From IMG/VR virus record IMGVR_UViG_3300020469_003050, positions 124,001-188,000 of that record: a DNA stretch of 64,000 bases; one strand, written 5' to 3'. Below are positions 1 through 63,317 of the stretch, in pieces (the first letter of the stretch is position 1; each line of letters opens with the position of its first letter). The notes below the pieces were generated by a model. It ran no database searches and was not told where the DNA came from. It saw nothing but the letters and a program-made list of their open reading frames with translations. The translations under genes and the position numbers were made by a program.

Positions 1-1172
1 GGACCAAGTTCTGGATCCATTGACTTTATATCTCTTGCTTTACATTTGTTTAAGATAAACAACTGTTCTTTCTCACTAAAGCTATCCCAAGGTTTGAACT
101 TCTCAGGTTCTCTCTTTTTATTCTCAATACAGTTTATTACAATATCATGAGTCCACTTTGGTACCATTGTTCTTAAACTTACTGGTTTTGTCTTTTCTGT
201 ATCTTCTCTCCAGATCCAACCTGGAAATTCTGCACACAATTCGAACACATTTTCTTTTCCCATTATTGCATGAAACGTTTCACGTGCCAGTGTTCTTCTA
301 TAAAAATGTCTAGGGTTTGGTACAAACTCAGTAATATGATGATGTAGATTTCTTAAACTTTCAGGATAGTGATTCATTTTTTTATTGAGTTTAGCTGGAG
401 TATCTTCTCCTGGCATTATATCCTGTCTTTGCCATACTGGTTCGTACACAGAATCCCATGCATCAACTCCCTTTGGTTGATAAGCCAATGGCTCACTGTA
501 TCTAGGAGAATATGTCCAGAGTACAAATAATCCTTTTGGTTTACCATATTTTTGGATAGCATGGACAACATTGTGCATCATGACATCATTACCTGTTCCA
601 CCTACACCTAAATTAATAACAGGTGTATTAAGTTTTCTACTTATTATTTGTCCTATAGTTTGCTCGTACTTGTTGCCTACGCCCATTACATGAGAGCATC
701 CTACAATAACATAGCTATTTTGCCAATCATATCGGTCGAAGTCTAATGGATTTCTAAAGCCTTCTTTGTTTAATCTGTATTCTACTTGATTGTCAGACCA
801 GTACCAATCAGGACCAATCTCTTGTTTTAGGTCTAACCATGTTTCTTTTTTATCTCCACCAAAGAACTCAGCTATCCAATAAGGATCTTTTCCCTCTGGT
901 TCAATACAAGCCCAATTAGTTTCAGGTGGGGGAGTAGGTGTATCTTCTACTGTTTTGTCTCTAGTACTTTCAATAGGTATTAACGCATTTACAGAACTCC
1001 AAAAGCCCAATTCAAAATCATTGATTGGCATTACGGTTGCATAACCCCAATCTTGTACCCTCATATAAAACCAAGGTCTTTGTTTCTTTAGATTAGGTCT
1101 ATCTGCCCAAGGGTTATCCCCTTGGTTCTTTACATACTCTTTGAATTTCAGATATTCTTCTTTTTTATTCAT
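1..1172 (-). CDS. SGNH/GDSL-like hydrolase-fold protein (partial, runs off the left edge)
   Basis: Hand translation from ATG at 1172 (MNKKEEYLKF...) is open to position 1. It contains YVIVGCSHVMGVG and INLGVGGTGND, matching SGNH blocks I and II. Not in the supplied ORF track. Confidence 0.7.
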   Translation of the reverse strand, partial: MNKKEEYLKFKEYVKNQGDNPWADRPNLKKQRPWFYMRVQDWGYATVMPINDFELGFWSSVNALIPIESTRDKTVEDTPTPPPETNWACIEPEGKDPYWIAEFFGGDKKETWLDLKQEIGPDWYWSDNQVEYRLNKEGFRNPLDFDRYDWQNSYVIVGCSHVMGVGNKYEQTIGQIISRKLNTPVINLGVGGTGNDVMMHNVVHAIQKYGKPKGLFVLWTYSPRYSEPLAYQPKGVDAWDSVYEPVWQRQDIMPGEDTPAKLNKKMNHYPESLRNLHHHITEFVPNPRHFYRRTLARETFHAIMGKENVFELCAEFPGWIWREDTEKTKPVSLRTMVPKWTHDIVINCIENKKREPEKFKPWDSFSEKEQLFILNKCKARDIKSMDPELG

Positions 1173-1182
1173 GTGTAAGTCC

Positions 1183-1211
1183 TTGACAATCTGGTCGAAT
1201 CATTATATACT
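1183..1211 (+). promoter_or_regulatory. sigma70-type promoter with CGAATC in the spacer
   Basis: TTGACA(1183-88)-N17-TATACT(1206-11). Confidence 0.55.
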
Positions 1212-1212
1212 A

Positions 1213-1220
1213 TATTTATG
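1213..1220 (-). promoter_or_regulatory. T4-like late promoter (CATAAATA)
   Basis: Reverse complement of tatttatg, about 40 nt upstream of the 1172 start. Confidence 0.45.
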
Positions 1221-1241
1221 TTCGTAGTTAAAGGGGAAAAC

Positions 1242-1272
1242 TTGACAACTATAAAAAAGGTGTTATTATAAT
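1242..1272 (+). promoter_or_regulatory. sigma70-type promoter
   Basis: TTGACA(1242-47)-N16-TATTAT with TGn extension; an overlapping TATAAT lies at 1267-72. Confidence 0.55.
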
Positions 1273-1275
1273 ATT

Positions 1276-2103
1276 ATGATGAATTCAGCAGAGGTATATG
1301 ATATGGAACATGTAGGTGGTAAACACACTCACTTTGAAAGAAACGTACTTTATCACCACAAGTATAATTTCCAAATAGATAATTCAGGTGTTGACTATAA
1401 AGATATTTTAGAACGTGAAGAAATTGGTTTCTCACGTGAGCAAGTTGTAGCGGCGGCTATTGTTGCCGATAGTTTCAATGAAGGTACATATGTAAAAGCA
1501 CAAGGTGGTGTTTTTGATTTTGCTGATACAAAACAAGGTAGTCGATATCTTCAAATGAAAATTCCGAATAAAGATATTCTTGTAGGTATTCTACATTTAT
1601 ATCCACATCTAATCGAAGATAAGCACATTGAAAGTGCAAAAGAAATTATTAAAGAACTTGAAATGGACTTCATGTTTAAAATCATGTCAGAAAAAATGAC
1701 AGAATTTGAAAGTGGCATTGCAAGTATACTGGCGTCTACAGATAAACTAGCCAAGCAATTTTGGGGTGTAGCCGCATATCTACCGACTTATGCAGTTAAG
1801 AAAGTATGGGAACGGGAAGTTACTGACCGTAGTGAAAACTCAGTACACATAACATCAACACGCAACGATGGTAAAGTGTTCATGGACATTACAGTATTGA
1901 AATCAAGTGCGAGTCAAACATATCCTGGTTTCAACGTATCTGCTATTTCTAGTGACGGCAATCGTGTAAGTTTCTTTAGTACTAAAAGTGGTTGGGAAGT
2001 AGATAAAGAATTTACGATTACTGCTAAAGTAAAAGGTCATGGTAATGTTTGGAATCAAGAACACATAGCAGAGACAAGGTTGAATTACGTAAAGGCTTTA
2101 TGA
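1276..2103 (+). CDS. hypothetical phage protein, possible C-terminal OB-fold
   Basis: 275 aa ORF behind a promoter. The C-terminus is beta-rich (...TITAKVKGH...ETRLNYVK). The fold guess is weak. Confidence 0.6.
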   Translation: MMNSAEVYDMEHVGGKHTHFERNVLYHHKYNFQIDNSGVDYKDILEREEIGFSREQVVAAAIVADSFNEGTYVKAQGGVFDFADTKQGSRYLQMKIPNKDILVGILHLYPHLIEDKHIESAKEIIKELEMDFMFKIMSEKMTEFESGIASILASTDKLAKQFWGVAAYLPTYAVKKVWEREVTDRSENSVHITSTRNDGKVFMDITVLKSSASQTYPGFNVSAISSDGNRVSFFSTKSGWEVDKEFTITAKVKGHGNVWNQEHIAETRLNYVKAL

Positions 2104-2195
2104 TTCCATTACTACTTACTCTTTGTTACTTAGGAGCAATATACGGTTTCGTATGTTTACTATTGTTACTTTGGAACAACGAAAACGTTAAATGA
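2100..2195 (+). CDS. 31 aa hydrophobic micro-protein
   Basis: MIPLLLTLCYLGAIYGFVCLLLLLWNNENVK; ATGA overlaps with both neighbouring genes. Confidence 0.5.
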   Translation: MIPLLLTLCYLGAIYGFVCLLLLLWNNENVK

Positions 2196-2317
2196 GAATA
2201 ATCTGTTATAAGTCACCAACTGATTACGTCACACACGATTTTCCAAAAGAAGAACTCAATGAAATATTAGACATATGTAAAGAACTTGATATCAAGTGGT
2301 ATGTCCTAGTATATTAA
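2192..2317 (+). CDS. 41 aa hypothetical protein
   Basis: MRIICYKSPTDYVTHDFPKEELNEILDICKELDIKWYVLVY; ATGA-coupled to the upstream micro-ORF. Confidence 0.5.
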   Translation: MRIICYKSPTDYVTHDFPKEELNEILDICKELDIKWYVLVY

Positions 2318-2339
2318 TAACGAAAGAATAAATACGACT

Positions 2340-2723
2340 ATGAACAAGTTACTAGTACACAAGCACCTGTTAATTCGTGCCGAGGTTAATGAGCCTCTAC
2401 AAAACAAAAACAAAGCAATTAAGTATTTGCGAAAGATGATTAAAGCCATTGGTATGAAACCAATGTATGGACCTACTGCATCTTATTGTAAGATGGAAGG
2501 CAATAGAGGTCTAACTGCTTTTGCAATTATAGAAACATCACATATTGCTATGCACATATGGGACGAAGTAAGTCCTGCACTATGTCAGTTAGATGTATAC
2601 ACTTGTTCAGAAATGGATCCTAATCAGGTTCTACCTTTCTTAGAAGTTATGGAACCTGCTAAAGTAGAATATAAATTCCTAGACAGAGAAAGTAAGTTTG
2701 AAGAAATATACTCAAGTAAATAA
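2340..2723 (+). CDS. speD: S-adenosylmethionine decarboxylase homolog (pyruvoyl-dependent, SpeD/SpeH class)
   Basis: GLTAFAIIETSHIAMHIWDE with self-cleavage SH site, QLDVYTC, and typical 127 aa size. Confidence 0.85.
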   Translation: MNKLLVHKHLLIRAEVNEPLQNKNKAIKYLRKMIKAIGMKPMYGPTASYCKMEGNRGLTAFAIIETSHIAMHIWDEVSPALCQLDVYTCSEMDPNQVLPFLEVMEPAKVEYKFLDRESKFEEIYSSK

Positions 2724-2769
2724 TTCAAACGTATACAGATTACTAAATCCCCAAAAGATAAGTATTAAT

Positions 2770-3543
2770 ATGAAAGAAGTAGTTTTAGTAACAGGTGGTT
2801 TCGACCCATTACATTCTGGTCATATAGAATACTTCAAGTCTGCCAAAGCACTAGGCGATGAACTAGTTGTAGGCATAAACTCAGATGAATGGTTAACTCG
2901 TAAGAAAGGCAGAGCATTTATGAACTTTGCTGAACGTAAAGCAATCATCGAGGCATTAGAAGTAGTTGACAAAGTTATAGACTTTGATGATAGTGATGAT
3001 ACTGCCAGTTACGCATTATATAAGATACAATCTATGTATCCAATCGGTACTAAGTTTACATTTGCAAATGGTGGAGATAGAGGTAATACTACAACACCTG
3101 AATACAAACAGTATGCAGAAATGCCATGGGTTAGATTTGAATTTGGTGTAGGTGGTACAAACAAAAGAAACTCTAGTAGTTGGATACTAAATGATTGGAA
3201 GACACAAAGAACTCATCGTACATGGGGATATTGGCGAGTACTTGATGATAAACAACCTAAGGTTGGGCAGAAGATAAAAGAACTAGTTATCAACCCACGC
3301 AAGAGTTTATCAAATCAAAAACATAGATATAGAAACGAATATTGGTATGTCCTAGAAGGAGATATCATGATTGAACTAGAATTTAACAAGAAAAAAGAAG
3401 CAATCTATCTGCGTCCACATGACACATTCTTAATACCTAAGGAATGTTGGCATAAAACAACGAATATTGGTGATGAACCAGCACATATTATTGAAGTACA
3501 ATATGGTGAAAGTTGTGAAGAATCAGACATTTTAAGAAAATAA
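2770..3543 (+). CDS. cytidylyltransferase-family domain fused to a mannose-6-phosphate isomerase type II-like cupin
   Basis: VTGGFDPLHSGH (HxGH) and FANGGDR; C-terminal RTWGYWRVL and SLSNQKHRYRNEYWYV. Start set at ATG 2770 rather than 2698. Confidence 0.85.
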   Translation: MKEVVLVTGGFDPLHSGHIEYFKSAKALGDELVVGINSDEWLTRKKGRAFMNFAERKAIIEALEVVDKVIDFDDSDDTASYALYKIQSMYPIGTKFTFANGGDRGNTTTPEYKQYAEMPWVRFEFGVGGTNKRNSSSWILNDWKTQRTHRTWGYWRVLDDKQPKVGQKIKELVINPRKSLSNQKHRYRNEYWYVLEGDIMIELEFNKKKEAIYLRPHDTFLIPKECWHKTTNIGDEPAHIIEVQYGESCEESDILRK

Positions 3544-5293: not shown

Positions 5294-5680
5294 ATGAAAA
5301 GAATTATTAAACTAGACCCAGATATAAATCCAATAACAGTTAAAGACGGTAGAGGTATAATAAGTACATTCTATCCACAAACAACTGATATCAAAGAGTG
5401 GAGTTATATAGTAACTCTCAAAGGGTCTGTAAGAGGACATCATCTACACAAAGAGTTTGACGAATATATTATGTTTGTAGAAGGCAGTGGCGTATATACT
5501 GAATTAACAGACGGAGAAGAACTCGTTACTCCTGTAGCAACTGGTGATTGTATCTTTATTCCTAGACTAACACCTCATACGTTTTACCCAACTTCTGATT
5601 CAAAAGCAATCGCTCTTATAACAAAGAAATGGAATGATTGTGATGAACCTTTGACAAGAGTAAACAATGAAGAAACGTAA
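5294..5680 (+). CDS. cupin, NDP-sugar epimerase/isomerase-like (RmlC/FdtA class)
   Basis: DGRGII, KGSVRGHHLHKEFDEY, IFIPRLTPHTF. Confidence 0.75.
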   Translation: MKRIIKLDPDINPITVKDGRGIISTFYPQTTDIKEWSYIVTLKGSVRGHHLHKEFDEYIMFVEGSGVYTELTDGEELVTPVATGDCIFIPRLTPHTFYPTSDSKAIALITKKWNDCDEPLTRVNNEET

Positions 5681-6893
5681 AAAGAATATCAGAATGATTT
5701 TAAATGAACGTACTACTTGTAGAGTATGTGGAAGTCCTGTAAAAGAATTACATGACTTTGGTAGAATACATATCAATGATTTCCCTACAACACCCGATGA
5801 TACTCCTGGCGAGGCACCAATGGTATTAGACCAATGTGAGGAATGTGAGTTAGTTCAACTTAGACATACAGTTAATCCAAAGATATTATATGGTGAACAC
5901 TATTGGTATGAGAGTGGATTGAATTCTAAACTAATGAATAACTTATTTGATATTGCAGGATACGTAAATGAGTATACTGATAAAGGCGATGTAGTATTAG
6001 ATATCGGTGCGAATGATGGTACGTTGTTAAGTGCGGTTAAGTCAGACAGATATAGAATAGGTTGCGAACCAGCACCTAATCTAATTAAGAAGTTAATGAA
6101 AAACTGTGAAGCAACTATAAACGATATGTGGCATTATAAACTAATGCAAGGAAAGAAAGCAAAAGTTATTACTGCTATTGGTATGTTCTATGATATGGAT
6201 AACCCAAATGATTTTATCTATAGTGTGAATGAAGCATTAACAGATGATGGCATATTCATTGCACAGTTAATGACACTTGCTCCTATGCTTAAAATGAAAG
6301 ACTTAGGCAATGTATGTCATGAGCATTTAGAATACTATAGTTATAAAAGTCTTGTAGAACTATATGAAACTAACGGTCTTGAAATCTATAAAGTAGTAGA
6401 GAACGATATACAAGGTGGAAGTTATCAACTATGGGCTAGAAAAAAGAACGAAGGCAGTATAGAATATTTTGAAGACTTATCTTCTTTAGAAACATTCTTT
6501 AAAGATGTAGAACGTAATGGTATGTTGTTAAGAACTGTATTACAAGATTCAAAATCAAATGGTAAAAAGAATTATGTATATGGTGCTAGTACAAAAGGAA
6601 ATACAATGTTACAGTTTTGGAAACTACATGATTTATTCGAAGGTGCCGCAGAAATACATCCAGATAAAGTAGGAAGATATACAGTTGGAACAGGCATACC
6701 TATTGTACATGAAGATGATGCAAAGAAAGATGCAGACTTATTCTTTGTCCCTAATTTTGGTTTCAAAGATATGTTTGTTGAAAAAGAAAGTGAATGGCTT
6801 GAACAAGGAGGAAGAATGCTCTTTGCAATGCCAGATGTTAATGTAGTAGAACACAAAGGAAAAAATGGAACAAAAGATAGTATACGTGACTAA
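5667..6893 (+). CDS. NDP-hexose 3-C-methyltransferase (TcaB9/EryBIII/NovU-like)
   Basis: Zn site CRVC...CEEC, YWYESG, VLDIGANDG, CHEHLEYYS, YGASTKGNT. Confidence 0.88.
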   Translation: MKKRKKNIRMILNERTTCRVCGSPVKELHDFGRIHINDFPTTPDDTPGEAPMVLDQCEECELVQLRHTVNPKILYGEHYWYESGLNSKLMNNLFDIAGYVNEYTDKGDVVLDIGANDGTLLSAVKSDRYRIGCEPAPNLIKKLMKNCEATINDMWHYKLMQGKKAKVITAIGMFYDMDNPNDFIYSVNEALTDDGIFIAQLMTLAPMLKMKDLGNVCHEHLEYYSYKSLVELYETNGLEIYKVVENDIQGGSYQLWARKKNEGSIEYFEDLSSLETFFKDVERNGMLLRTVLQDSKSNGKKNYVYGASTKGNTMLQFWKLHDLFEGAAEIHPDKVGRYTVGTGIPIVHEDDAKKDADLFFVPNFGFKDMFVEKESEWLEQGGRMLFAMPDVNVVEHKGKNGTKDSIRD

Positions 6894-42910: not shown

Positions 42911-42936
42911 TATATACTCTCTTTACTTATTAAGAG

Positions 42937-42944
42937 TATTTATC
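42937..42944 (-). promoter_or_regulatory. late promoter GATAAATA
   Basis: Upstream of the gp25-gp6 operon. Confidence 0.7.
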
Positions 42945-42970
42945 ATTGTATAAACTTCGAACTTTTAGTA

Positions 42971-42999
42971 TTGACTTTTTATTTCATTTACTATATAAT
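42971..42999 (+). promoter_or_regulatory. sigma70 promoter of clpP
   Basis: TTGACT-N17-TATAAT. Confidence 0.75.
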
Positions 43000-43038
43000 C
43001 TATCATAATCATAATAAAAACGGAGAATAAATAAAAGT

Positions 43039-54948: not shown

Positions 54949-54968
54949 GTTTAACTCCTTCTTTGTTG

Positions 54969-54976
54969 TATTTATC
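54969..54976 (-). promoter_or_regulatory. late promoter GATAAATA
   Basis: Upstream of the hub/spike operon. Confidence 0.7.
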
Positions 54977-55017
54977 GTTACTTAAACTACGAAGTTTAAA
55001 AATAAGTATTTTAGCAC

Positions 55018-60869: not shown

Positions 60870-60998
60870 ATGTTTAAGTGGCATAAAAAACAAACAGAAT
60901 ATTGGCAAAATAAATTTAATGTAGATTCATATACTATGATGTGGATAGCCTATGTTAAAGGCCTAATTATGGGTTTACTTATTGCTTGGTTTATTTAA
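60870..60998 (+). CDS. 42 aa membrane micro-protein
   Basis: MFKWHKKQTEYWQNKFNVDSYTMMWIAYVKGLIMGLLIAWFI; RBS GGAG. Confidence 0.55.
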   Translation: MFKWHKKQTEYWQNKFNVDSYTMMWIAYVKGLIMGLLIAWFI

Positions 60999-61521
60999 TA
61001 CCTTCAATGCAGTGACGTTCAAATACGTCTGAATTGTACTTCCAAAATTCTTCTGCACTTGTTAGTATCCAACAACCATTCTTCTCAGACTTGTAAGTTA
61101 CACTAATCGGTGAACGCCATCCGAGTCCATTCATACGGTCTTGAAACGCAACATAAGTTCCTATACGATTAAATTTCATAAAGATAATGTTAACATCACT
61201 ATCTTCTGCAATCTCCATAGTTTGTACAATCCAGTCCTCCAAAAGAGGAATTTTTTTATCATACAATAAATGGTGCCAAGGGAATTCTTTATAAAACTTA
61301 CACTCACAGTTAAAGTACTTCCAGTTATCAGGAGGTATAATATCTCCTTTAAAACCTCGTACTTGTCCTTCGCTTAAGTTAGTTGCTCTATGGAAATTAC
61401 TTCCACCTATAAATGCTCCAGAATTAGGGACACGTACAAAACTACCATTATATTTTTCACTTAGAAATTTTGCTTGTTCTCTTTCATATCCAGAACCCTT
61501 AGATTTGCTTTTACTTGGCAT
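60991..61521 (-). CDS. PD-(D/E)xK nuclease, Holliday junction resolvase-like
   Basis: SKGSGYEREQA...RVPNSGA...KGDI...ECKFYK. Confidence 0.8.
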   Translation of the reverse strand: MPSKSKSKGSGYEREQAKFLSEKYNGSFVRVPNSGAFIGGSNFHRATNLSEGQVRGFKGDIIPPDNWKYFNCECKFYKEFPWHHLLYDKKIPLLEDWIVQTMEIAEDSDVNIIFMKFNRIGTYVAFQDRMNGLGWRSPISVTYKSEKNGCWILTSAEEFWKYNSDVFERHCIEGIK

Positions 61522-61621
61522 ATGTTTAATCTCTTTTCATTATAAAAGGTCTAAAGACCTAATCCCAATTAATATTCATTCGTTAGCACTCATTCATATT
61601 AATCGGTATTTCTATTTCTTT

Positions 61622-61650
61622 ATTATATAACATTAATTGGTATAAGTCAA
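61622..61650 (-). promoter_or_regulatory. sigma70 promoter
   Basis: Minus strand TTGACT-N17-TATAAT. Confidence 0.7.
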
Positions 61651-61659
61651 ATGATATTA

Positions 61660-62135
61660 TATTATGAGTCTCTGTCCCGTGAAGAAGCCATAATTGCCCT
61701 GTTGCCAGGACAATTAAAAAATGGCTGTACAGAAAATCTTGTCTTATCTGTCCCTTGCTCATCGCCTCTATGTCTAAGTTAGTCGCTAGTTACGACGGAG
61801 TCGGTTGACGATCCCTCCTTAACTTAGTATTGCATCTTTCGATTCAACGGCACCCTTTATAATCCACATAGATAGAAACTATAAAAAGCAGATAGTGTTA
61901 TAAAAACCTATCATCGGTAATATTATACTAGTCAACCATGTTCTTTAGGAACCATGGCTGTTTTATGATTATGAATACTCTTTGTGGTTTACGAGAAGAA
62001 TGTCAGAATTCATCCTGACTAGTCCGACGGCAAACACTACGTTTGCAGTCTCAATCCCGTGTCGGCAACCCGACAAACGATTCCACTATGTATGCTGAGA
62101 TATTAGTCATTCCCTTTTCCTATTCGCCGAGATAT
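61660..62135 (-). ncRNA. candidate large structured non-coding RNA (~480 nt)
   Basis: GC-elevated, no credible ORF, at least eight stems, GCAA and GAAA tetraloops and G-U pairs that work on the minus strand. Confidence 0.6.
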
Positions 62136-62161
62136 ATATTAGATTGTATTAGTTTTATTAG

Positions 62162-62401
62162 TTATAGTATTGGCATTCCTGCCTTTTTACTCATTTCAAA
62201 ATTCTGGTCAATAATCTCATTCAGATGTTTGATATGATTCACTGGCATTTCATGAAGTTCTGAGATAGAAACCCCACCCCTCATGTACCAAGATAATTGT
62301 AACAGATTCTTATGTACCTTGTCAAGTTCTTTTTCAAACTTTTTTTGTTTTTCTGCAATTTCTTCACCGCTGGCGGTTGCTAGCCAGCCTAGGAAAAATT
62401 T
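62162..62401 (-). CDS. -1 frame extension of the gp26-like gene (gp51-like module), no own upstream start codon
   Basis: FLGWLATASGEEIAEKQKKFEKELDKVHKNLLQLSWYMRGGVSISELHEMPVNHIKHLNEIIDQNFEMSKKAGMPIL*; entered via the A_AAT_TTT heptamer. Confidence 0.6.
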   Translation of the reverse strand, partial: KFFLGWLATASGEEIAEKQKKFEKELDKVHKNLLQLSWYMRGGVSISELHEMPVNHIKHLNEIIDQNFEMSKKAGMPIL

Positions 62402-63222
62402 GCAGGATTAATCTCTATATTAACTTTTTGTACATGGTCGCATTCTGGACATTTAAATTCAAAATTGTTTAACGCTTCTGGCTTTTTAGCTATGTCTTTA
62501 ACTCTTTTATCCATATTTGTAACTACTGATGTAGGAACATTAGCAAGAAATTCAATAATTTGTTTCTTGTCAGTGACCTCACCTTCTGGTGTTTCTATCT
62601 TATCGATAGTCTCTGAAATCAAATCAACATTGTATTCAGCTACACGTTTGAAACTTTTGTAAAACTTTTTCGCAAGTTCCAACTCATCCTTATCATTAGT
62701 AATATCATTTTTGACATTATTAACGATTCGCTGTTCTTCAAGCTGGATAAGAGCAACCCGTGTAACACTTTCTAGTGTTGGTGGTCTCATATGGATTGTT
62801 AAATTTTCATATACTACAGGCTCAACCTTATTAATTTCAGGGAACTTGTTTAGTACAAAATCGATATCAATATTGAAATCATTCTTATTCTCACACTCTT
62901 TACATGTATGAGTATATGTGAGATTACTACCGTTTGTTGCGTATTGAATAGCCATATAAAGTGCTTCTGCATCAATGTTGCATAATTTTCTTGCATCTTT
63001 GATACTAGGAACACAACTTTCTATTAAAGAAATCATTGCCTCACCATTAAGAAGTGCATCTGGATTACGCATTGTAATCTCATCGATAGCAGTCATAGGC
63101 ATAACGCCCACTTCTTCAATAATAGTTTGGTCTATTTCTGGGTTAAATTTACCTTTAGTTGGTAAACTAACATATATAGCTGGCTTTCTAAAGTACTTAG
63201 TTAGCGGGTTATCGGTCATCAT
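62389..63222 (-). CDS. gp26: baseplate hub/tail assembly chaperone, T4 gp26-like
   Basis: NPLTKYFRKP...LPTKG...MTAIDEI...PDALLNG...CKEC...CPEC. Confidence 0.75.
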   Translation of the reverse strand: MMTDNPLTKYFRKPAIYVSLPTKGKFNPEIDQTIIEEVGVMPMTAIDEITMRNPDALLNGEAMISLIESCVPSIKDARKLCNIDAEALYMAIQYATNGSNLTYTHTCKECENKNDFNIDIDFVLNKFPEINKVEPVVYENLTIHMRPPTLESVTRVALIQLEEQRIVNNVKNDITNDKDELELAKKFYKSFKRVAEYNVDLISETIDKIETPEGEVTDKKQIIEFLANVPTSVVTNMDKRVKDIAKKPEALNNFEFKCPECDHVQKVNIEINPANFS

Positions 63223-63236
63223 TAATTCCTTGGATT

Positions 63237-63244
63237 GATAAATA
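63237..63244 (+). promoter_or_regulatory. late promoter GATAAATA
   Basis: Upstream of the tape-measure-like gene. Confidence 0.6.
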
Positions 63245-63288
63245 CACTTATAATAAACTTTAAGTGGTTATATACGTATATTTAGATG

Positions 63289-63317
63289 TATTATAAACTA
63301 CGAAGTTTAACTTGTCA
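63289..63317 (-). promoter_or_regulatory. sigma70 promoter for the gp26-like gene
   Basis: Minus strand TTGACA-agttaaacttcgtagtt-TATAAT (N17). Confidence 0.8.

Follow-up and report, generated by a model that had tools for sequence, protein, structure and literature searches.

What occupies the 640 nt that separate a phage baseplate-hub gene from a nuclease gene in the window, the 64,000-nt stretch of large-phage DNA analysed here? We find that the gap encodes a large, intricately folded non-coding RNA on the minus strand, which matches no described RNA family and is conserved across a wide group of uncultured large phages. It probably does something important, although its function is unknown. 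An initial annotation made from the sequence alone had proposed a large structured phage ncRNA on this strand, possibly of a new family, and comparative evidence supports that proposal.

The hub-nuclease gap is non-coding and matches no known RNA family

The window is AT-rich, about 33% GC, and densely coded. Its longest gap is the 640-nt stretch 61522-62161, the next longest being 236 nt. The genes that bound it, in minus-strand order, are as follows.

62389-63222, minus strand: upstream, a gp26-like baseplate-hub gene (Pfam T4_baseplate, E = 1e-18).
62162-62407, minus strand: an 81-codon open frame in the -1 frame relative to the hub gene, without a start codon of its own.
60991-61521, minus strand: downstream, a 176-aa PD-(D/E)XK endonuclease, or 'resolvase' (PDDEXK_15, E = 1.5e-23).

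The hub gene appears to use a programmed -1 frameshift to reach the 81-codon frame. A canonical slippery heptamer, A_AAU_UUU (62395-62401), lies 1-5 codons before the stop and is followed by a GCUGGC...GCCAGC hairpin (62369-62388), and both are conserved in all relatives. The frameshift would add a conserved 81-aa extension (..KFF..WL..AS.EEI...WYMRGGVS..) that has no Pfam match. In distant relatives and in Sinorhizobium phage Phosso the same peptide is a separate ATGA-overlapping ORF. The true non-coding gap therefore starts at 62161, and the upstream gene is a hub gene with a conserved frameshift extension, not a tail chaperone as such, as had initially been annotated.

Stop codons occur in all frames of the gap, and no ORF in it is conserved among relatives. 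GC content, initially described as visibly higher than in the surroundings, is only modestly raised (0.36-0.40 against about 0.30-0.35 nearby). A single-sequence fold is weakly better than shuffles (z = -2.2 on the minus strand and -1.25 on the plus strand), which on its own would not be convincing. Covariance-model searches of the whole window against Rfam 15 (4227 models, including ROOL, GOLLD, OLE, HEARO, raiA, RNase P, tmRNA, group I/II introns, 6S and the ribozymes) gave no hits at gathering thresholds, and a permissive scan of 61400-62500 at E<=10 gave only four noise hits at 11-17 bits, none of which lies on the RNA core. ARAGORN found no tRNA or tmRNA gene in the window, and blastn against 50,697 cultured phage records gave no match. 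Searches of the literature found only the general class of large ornate RNAs, namely GOLLD, ROOL and OLE (PMC12286853), and an unnamed catalogue of more than 10,000 viral RNA candidates, some of them 'upstream of resolvase genes' (PMC10690425), overlap with which could not be assessed.

Covariation supports a conserved, pseudoknotted RNA

Protein-anchored and motif searches recovered the same intergenic element, at the same locus, from more than 60 marine viral or metagenome contigs, yielding 38 distinct full-length core sequences in about 13 clades. The contigs are 160-370 kb where long enough to tell. A looser two-anchor pattern, CGGGATTGA...CTTCTCG, returned mostly chance hits, and three loci found with a 22-nt hairpin pattern (L200, L220 and L222) proved to be chance matches, as did all five bacterial-genome hits. 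Hence no bacterial genome or prophage among the GTDB species representatives carries the RNA. The gap is as conserved as the flanking genes, with 67-69% DNA identity where the resolvase is 58-69% identical in protein.

The elements of the RNA, listed in the 5' to 3' direction of the minus strand, are given below.

62134-62161, minus strand: three tandem CUAAUA(N) repeats, spaced 9-10 nt, directly after the extension ORF stop.
62097-62114, minus strand: a tentative short 5' hairpin (GGGA/UCUC) presenting a conserved CUAAUAU loop.
61984-62086, minus strand: the 5' domain, in which GUGG/CCAC closes a multi-helix junction with hairpins Pc (62060-75), Pd (62030-46) and Pe (62002-19), joined by the invariant strands CGGGAUUGAG, GCCGUCGGACUAG and CUUCUCGUAAA.
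61933-61960, minus strand: hairpin Pf (CAGCCAUGG.UUC / GAA.CAUGGUUG) with the conserved loop YCUAAAGR.
61891-61912, minus strand: hairpin Pg (GAUAGGUU / AAC.CUAUC).
61852-61889, minus strand: hairpin Ph (GCUUUUUAUAG / UUAUAAAGGGU), whose loop holds the 5' strand of the pseudoknot (UCUAUGU, 61866-72).
61775-61848, minus strand: GAAA-capped hairpin Pi (61829-48), preceded by invariant GUGCCGUUG and followed by a three-way junction of Pj (61822-26 with 61775-79), Pk (61797-818, invariant GGRAUCGYCAACCGAC) and Pl (61782-96).
61767-61773, minus strand: the 3' strand of the pseudoknot helix (ACAUAGA), pairing with 61866-72.
61729-61754, minus strand: hairpin Pm (loop CAAG) and repeat A (GGGACAGA, 61747-54).
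61691-61716, minus strand: hairpin Pn, an 11-bp, nearly invariant stem with a GNAA tetraloop.
61671-61678, minus strand: repeat B (GGGACAGA), a copy of repeat A just 3' of Pn.

RNAalifold on 23 sequences of the whole core gave 70 pairs, 27 of them with compensatory changes. We then modelled the two domains separately. In the 3' core (model R1, alignment A8), 98.7% of cells are paired, against 31-45% when partners are slid, and 16 of 31 pairs have double changes, which 0 of 500 shuffles reach. In the 5' domain (model R2, alignment A9), 99.5% are paired, against 36-49% when slid, and 10 of 19 pairs are compensatory, again reached by 0 of 500 shuffles. Within the 5' domain, CGGGA/UCUCG (62055-59 with 61992-96) is favoured over UCG/CGG, because a distant subfamily (II, below) has CUCC/GGAG at the same places.

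Compensatory changes affect 5 of 8 pairs in Pf and 6 of 8 in Pg, where the clade of locus L050 has a wholly different CUAG/CUAG stem. Hairpin Ph is misaligned by MAFFT, but it forms in every clade from a different, complementary sequence. The Ph loop pairs with a strand 90 nt downstream to give an H-type pseudoknot that crosses Ph and encloses the GAAA hairpin and the three-way junction (5 of 7 pairs compensatory, 98.6% paired). Pn is 99% paired, and its closing pair covaries from U-A to C-G (17 against 21 sequences). Repeat B copies the 5' strand of hairpin Pm, and the two repeats change in step in every marine clade, which we cannot explain. Alternative pairing of repeats A and B with the Pn 5' strand fits the marine family partly, but not subfamily IV. 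In the short 5' hairpin, ACUAAUAU is at least 90% conserved, and subfamily IV has a well-covarying hairpin with an AGCUAAUAUCG loop at the equivalent place, although the stem in the marine family is weak. Between Pf and Pg (about 61913-61932) lies a variable expansion site, at which the window clade has no hairpin, the L030 and L050 clades have one GUGCA/UGCAC-type hairpin, the L038 clade has two in tandem and the L035 clade has a long insertion. About 40% of core positions are invariant across clades whose flanking proteins are 50-70% identical, and many of these are unpaired junction nucleotides, as expected for tertiary structure or bound partners.

Frequent conserved G-U pairs, many of which would be C.A on the other strand, fix the RNA strand as minus, as initially annotated. 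Most of the helices proposed in that annotation were likewise confirmed by position and by covariation, namely GTCGG/CCGAC (62061-74), GCAAAC/GTTTGC (62030-46), GTCAG/CTGAC (62002-19), CAGCCATG/CATGGTTG (61933-60), the GAAA-capped stem (61829-48), the three-way junction closed by TAAGT/ACTTA (61775-826) and the GCAA-capped hairpin (61691-716). Others were not supported in relatives: AATC/GATT and TCTCA/TGAGA are not conserved, AGCCAT/ATGGCT is only 70% canonical, and the long-range ACTAGT pairing becomes an A.C mismatch in most clades. The pseudoknot and the 3' module described below had been missed. We also rejected a terminal helix CAUA/UAUG, which shows only one-sided changes and competes with the covarying closing pair of Pn, and a Pc-Pk loop kiss, GGUUG/CAACC, which is lost in two clades. 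Strings resembling RNase P CR-I/CR-IV had no Rfam support, and the two parts of a possible 11-nt GAAA receptor (CCUAAAG and UAUGG) are not conserved together.

Extent of the putative transcription unit

The unit appears larger than first annotated, extending about 120 nt further 3'. A consensus scan and comparison of clades suggest the following boundaries, although the promoter, terminator and transcript ends are inferences from sequence.

62296-62325, minus strand: a putative sigma-70-type promoter (TTGACA, 18 nt, TGnTACAAT) embedded in the 3' part of the gp26-extension ORF.
61565-61606, minus strand: hairpin 2, an 11-bp stem enclosing GA-AU-GA / GA-AU-GA (two tandem G.A pairs) and a short capped helix.
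61542-61560, minus strand: an intrinsic-terminator-like hairpin, AGGUC-UUUA-GACCU, followed by UUUUAU, the likely 3' end of the RNA.

The promoter had been suggested as possible in the initial annotation, and conservation supports it. TTGAC, the TG of an extended -10 and TAnnnT are kept in 12 diverged clades, although they lie on synonymous positions of codons that are minor in this genome (GAC 29%, CTT 16%, CTG 2%), and the element matches the window's other early-type promoters. However, a simple search found no comparable promoter upstream of the RNA in the distant subfamilies. The CUAAUA repeats that follow the ORF stop, present in 3-6 copies in other clades, are absent from other intergenic regions of the window. 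Their role is unexplained, and a reading as late promoters was dropped, since the late-type motif of this phage is GATAAATA. That T4-late-like motif, GATAAATA/TCTAAATA, occurs in three promoter regions (42911-43038, 54949-55017 and 63223-63300) that share a palindrome, AAACTTCGWAGTTT, placed about 8 nt upstream of it. At the hub gene the palindrome lies in the spacer of a TTGACA...TATAAT promoter, and it looks like a shared operator at early/late switch points.

After the core of about 450 nt and a variable AU-rich spacer comes the 3' module. Hairpin 2 is unique in the 64-kb window and is conserved in all subfamilies whatever the neighbouring gene. In the window clade the spacer carries a second, near-consensus sigma-70-like promoter (61622-61650, minus strand, TTGACT-17-TATAAT), also present in close relatives (TTGACA) but not in other clades, which could drive early expression of the resolvase through hairpin 2.

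Distant subfamilies and independence from neighbouring genes

A profile of hub proteins recovered 584 or more related viral loci, of which 80 were kept. All 26 loci whose hub protein is at least 48% identical carry the RNA just after the hub extension on the same strand. Loci with 31-37% hub identity (subfamilies II-IV) gave weaker covariance-model hits on the opposite strand, at E from 2e-5 to 0.02 with filters off. A broadened model, R3, then reached E from 1e-11 to 1e-3 for subfamilies III and IV, R1 and R3 detecting there the domain of Pi and the three-way junction, while R2 links subfamily II through the 5' domain. By inspection and BLAST, nearly all of these loci hold a 500-600-nt RNA with the hallmarks GAGACUGC-hairpin-UUGCCGU.GGA, the Ph/pseudoknot arrangement, GCCGUUG, a Pk hairpin with a CAAC loop, a Pn-like hairpin flanked by a co-evolving direct repeat, hairpin 2, and an intrinsic terminator of different sequence, formed by GC hairpins plus U runs at the same position. 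Subfamily IV alone shows 28 of 75 compensatory pairs. It keeps the pseudoknot as UUAGCGU/ACGCUAA or CAGCAG/CUGCUG, and an analogous repeat of about 24 nt flanks its Pn.

In these distant phages the RNA lies downstream of the nuclease gene, instead of upstream, and convergent with the hub gene. The nuclease is PDDEXK_15 in some clades and a SegE-type GIY-YIG endonuclease (Pfam PF19835, E about 1e-32 to 1e-35) in others (at the loci L274, L275, L283 and L295), and the same swap occurs within the marine family (for example at the loci L049, L050 and L054). The SegE-type gene is either a homing endonuclease parked beside a highly conserved RNA gene or a non-orthologous replacement of the resolvase. 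An element that keeps its own 3' module and terminator-like hairpin while its orientation and neighbours change is most probably an independent gene rather than a leader or a 3' UTR. In the marine family, however, the RNA always follows the hub gene on the same strand, and co-transcription as a long 3' UTR is possible there.

We conclude that the RNA founds a new family, in fact a superfamily across a major lineage of large phages, with no detectable relation to any described RNA. Large, highly structured RNAs with conserved tertiary-looking cores are rare, and almost all have turned out to be ribozymes or central RNP components. Conservation of this one across phages whose neighbouring structural protein has diverged to about 30% identity implies a long-standing, selected function in a largely uncultured group of large (160-370 kb) phages from oceans and other habitats, for which it also provides a new marker, and possibly a new principle of how big phages use RNA.

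Possible modes of action

We favour the view that this is an autonomous non-coding RNA gene, a reading to which, in the absence of expression data, we give a probability of about 0.6. Host-type RNA polymerase would most likely start at the conserved promoter inside the end of the extension ORF, perhaps with a contribution from read-through of the late hub mRNA, and stop at the hairpin plus U run at 61542-60, giving a primary transcript of roughly 0.6-0.75 kb. That the element is a genuine structured RNA is close to certain, and that it is autonomous and trans-acting is likely. That it is a protein-binding scaffold, as opposed to a ribozyme or an RNA-only assembly, is our best guess but remains tentative. 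The candidate protein sites are the reiterated single-stranded CUAAUA motifs, the two co-evolving repeats and the tandem-G.A hairpin, and the invariant junction nucleotides would hold a precise tertiary fold. No partner protein is identified, no RNA-binding gene is seen to co-vary with the RNA, and the repeated motifs could serve RNA-RNA contacts instead. On this view the RNA probably serves a core step of the phage cycle rather than regulating a neighbouring gene. Phage phi29 pRNA is precedent for a phage-encoded structured RNA that works in trans as part of a protein machine with a core role in virion production, although pRNA is about 120-174 nt with a different fold and acts on the portal, and there is no similarity and no evidence of a virion or assembly role here. 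Protein-sponge RNAs of the CsrB/RsmZ type also carry reiterated short motifs, and the Pe loop GGAUGAA resembles a CsrA/RsmE site, but there is only one GGA hairpin loop and the bulk of the RNA is a rigid conserved fold rather than an array of repeated hairpins.

A ribozyme, either trimming itself out of the polycistronic or promoter-proximal transcript or acting on another substrate, is unlikely but not excluded. The size, the pseudoknotted core and the many invariant unpaired junction nucleotides are typical of large ribozymes, the primary transcript from the inferred promoter would carry about 125 nt of coding sequence that would have to be removed, and the duplicated motif just 3' of Pn could mark a processing site. 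However, no ribozyme family in Rfam matches even at E<=10, and the hammerhead-like CUGAUGAG seen in one clade is not conserved. The strand order of the 3' core does match P3/P7/P3'/P8/P7' of a group I intron, running from helix 5' strand through pseudoknot 5' strand, helix 3' strand and GAAA hairpin to pseudoknot 3' strand, and T4-like phages do carry such introns. Yet there is no P4-P6 equivalent between the Ph and pseudoknot strands, whose 5' strands are separated by only 3-9 nt, there is no RF00028 hit, and there is no exon continuity, since the extension ORF ends in a conserved stop and the downstream gene has its own start. In distant relatives the RNA stands alone between convergent genes. 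An RNA-only homo-oligomer built through intermolecular loop or repeat contacts seems less likely still. ROOL (RF03087) and GOLLD (RF01998) are likewise large (about 0.5-0.8 kb), ornate, multi-junction, pseudoknotted RNAs of phages or prophages, of unknown function and found by comparative genomics. Cryo-EM has shown that such RNAs form multimers (PMC12286853), and repeat B of subfamily IV (AUCUAGAU / AUCUGGAU) is self-complementary, as a dimerisation site would be. But the marine repeats (GGGACAGA) are not self-complementary, no homology to ROOL, GOLLD or OLE was found, the likeness to GOLLD/ROOL drawn in the initial annotation is one of size only, the helix layout differs from that of ROOL and GOLLD, and the RNA is not near tRNA genes, of which the window has none, but at a fixed hub/nuclease locus of large myovirus-like phages.

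Regulation in cis is similarly doubtful, whether as a giant leader controlling the resolvase or as a 3' UTR stabilising or regulating the hub mRNA or its frameshift. In its favour, the RNA lies in the window between the two genes on their strand, hairpin 2 and the last hairpin sit 20-85 nt before the resolvase start, and a catalogue of viral structured-RNA candidates reports motifs upstream of resolvase genes (PMC10690425). In T4, RNA structure probably also lies immediately upstream of a Holliday-junction resolvase gene, gene 49 (endonuclease VII), but as a single hairpin masking the ribosome-binding site. Here the unit is about 600 nt, its core of about 450 nt far exceeds known leaders, a terminator-like hairpin separates it from the downstream gene, and the whole unit is unchanged in clades where that gene is replaced and has reversed orientation relative to both neighbours in subfamilies II-IV. 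A degraded or unconventional coding region, or a DNA-level element such as an origin, a pac site or a homing-endonuclease target, might be suggested by the module boundary and by the adjacent SegE-type gene, but is effectively refuted by the compensatory, strand-specific pattern of substitution. More speculatively, and with little weight placed on it, the RNA could be an ancient, essential catalytic or architectural subunit of a machine specific to this phage lineage, such as a partner of the hub extension protein or of the recombination/packaging nucleases next to which it is always encoded. This would make it a second example, after phi29 pRNA, of an RNA built into phage morphogenesis or DNA processing, or else a new class of large ribozyme.

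Cultured relatives

The nearest cultured phages by hub protein, at 27-34% identity, are the jumbo phages Phosso, Atu_ph07, PA5oct and the Rak2-like group. Covariance-model and nhmmer searches of Phosso, Atu_ph07, PA5oct and SCTP-2 gave nothing significant. However, we noticed in Phosso (PV764938.1, locus positions 5330-6250, minus strand of the locus) an unannotated, GC-rich, ORF-free stretch of about 0.9 kb next to its PDDEXK resolvase, which is 39% identical to the window's. This stretch has many hairpins and ends in a clear hairpin-2 look-alike (..GUC AUGAGUUUACGAAUGA ACAC..) plus a terminal hairpin, and it may be a culturable-phage counterpart of the RNA, although homology is not shown here or in PA5oct. 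In Pseudomonas phage PA5oct (NC_071039.1), whose four published ncRNAs lie elsewhere in the genome (PMC7318152), the 2.2 kb between the hub and resolvase genes (locus 1167-3357) holds no obvious large RNA, but only 39-50-aa 'hypothetical' ORFs and one antisense 150-aa ORF, together with a hairpin-2 look-alike followed by a strong terminator (locus about 2275-2330, minus) and a second look-alike on the other strand at about 2468.
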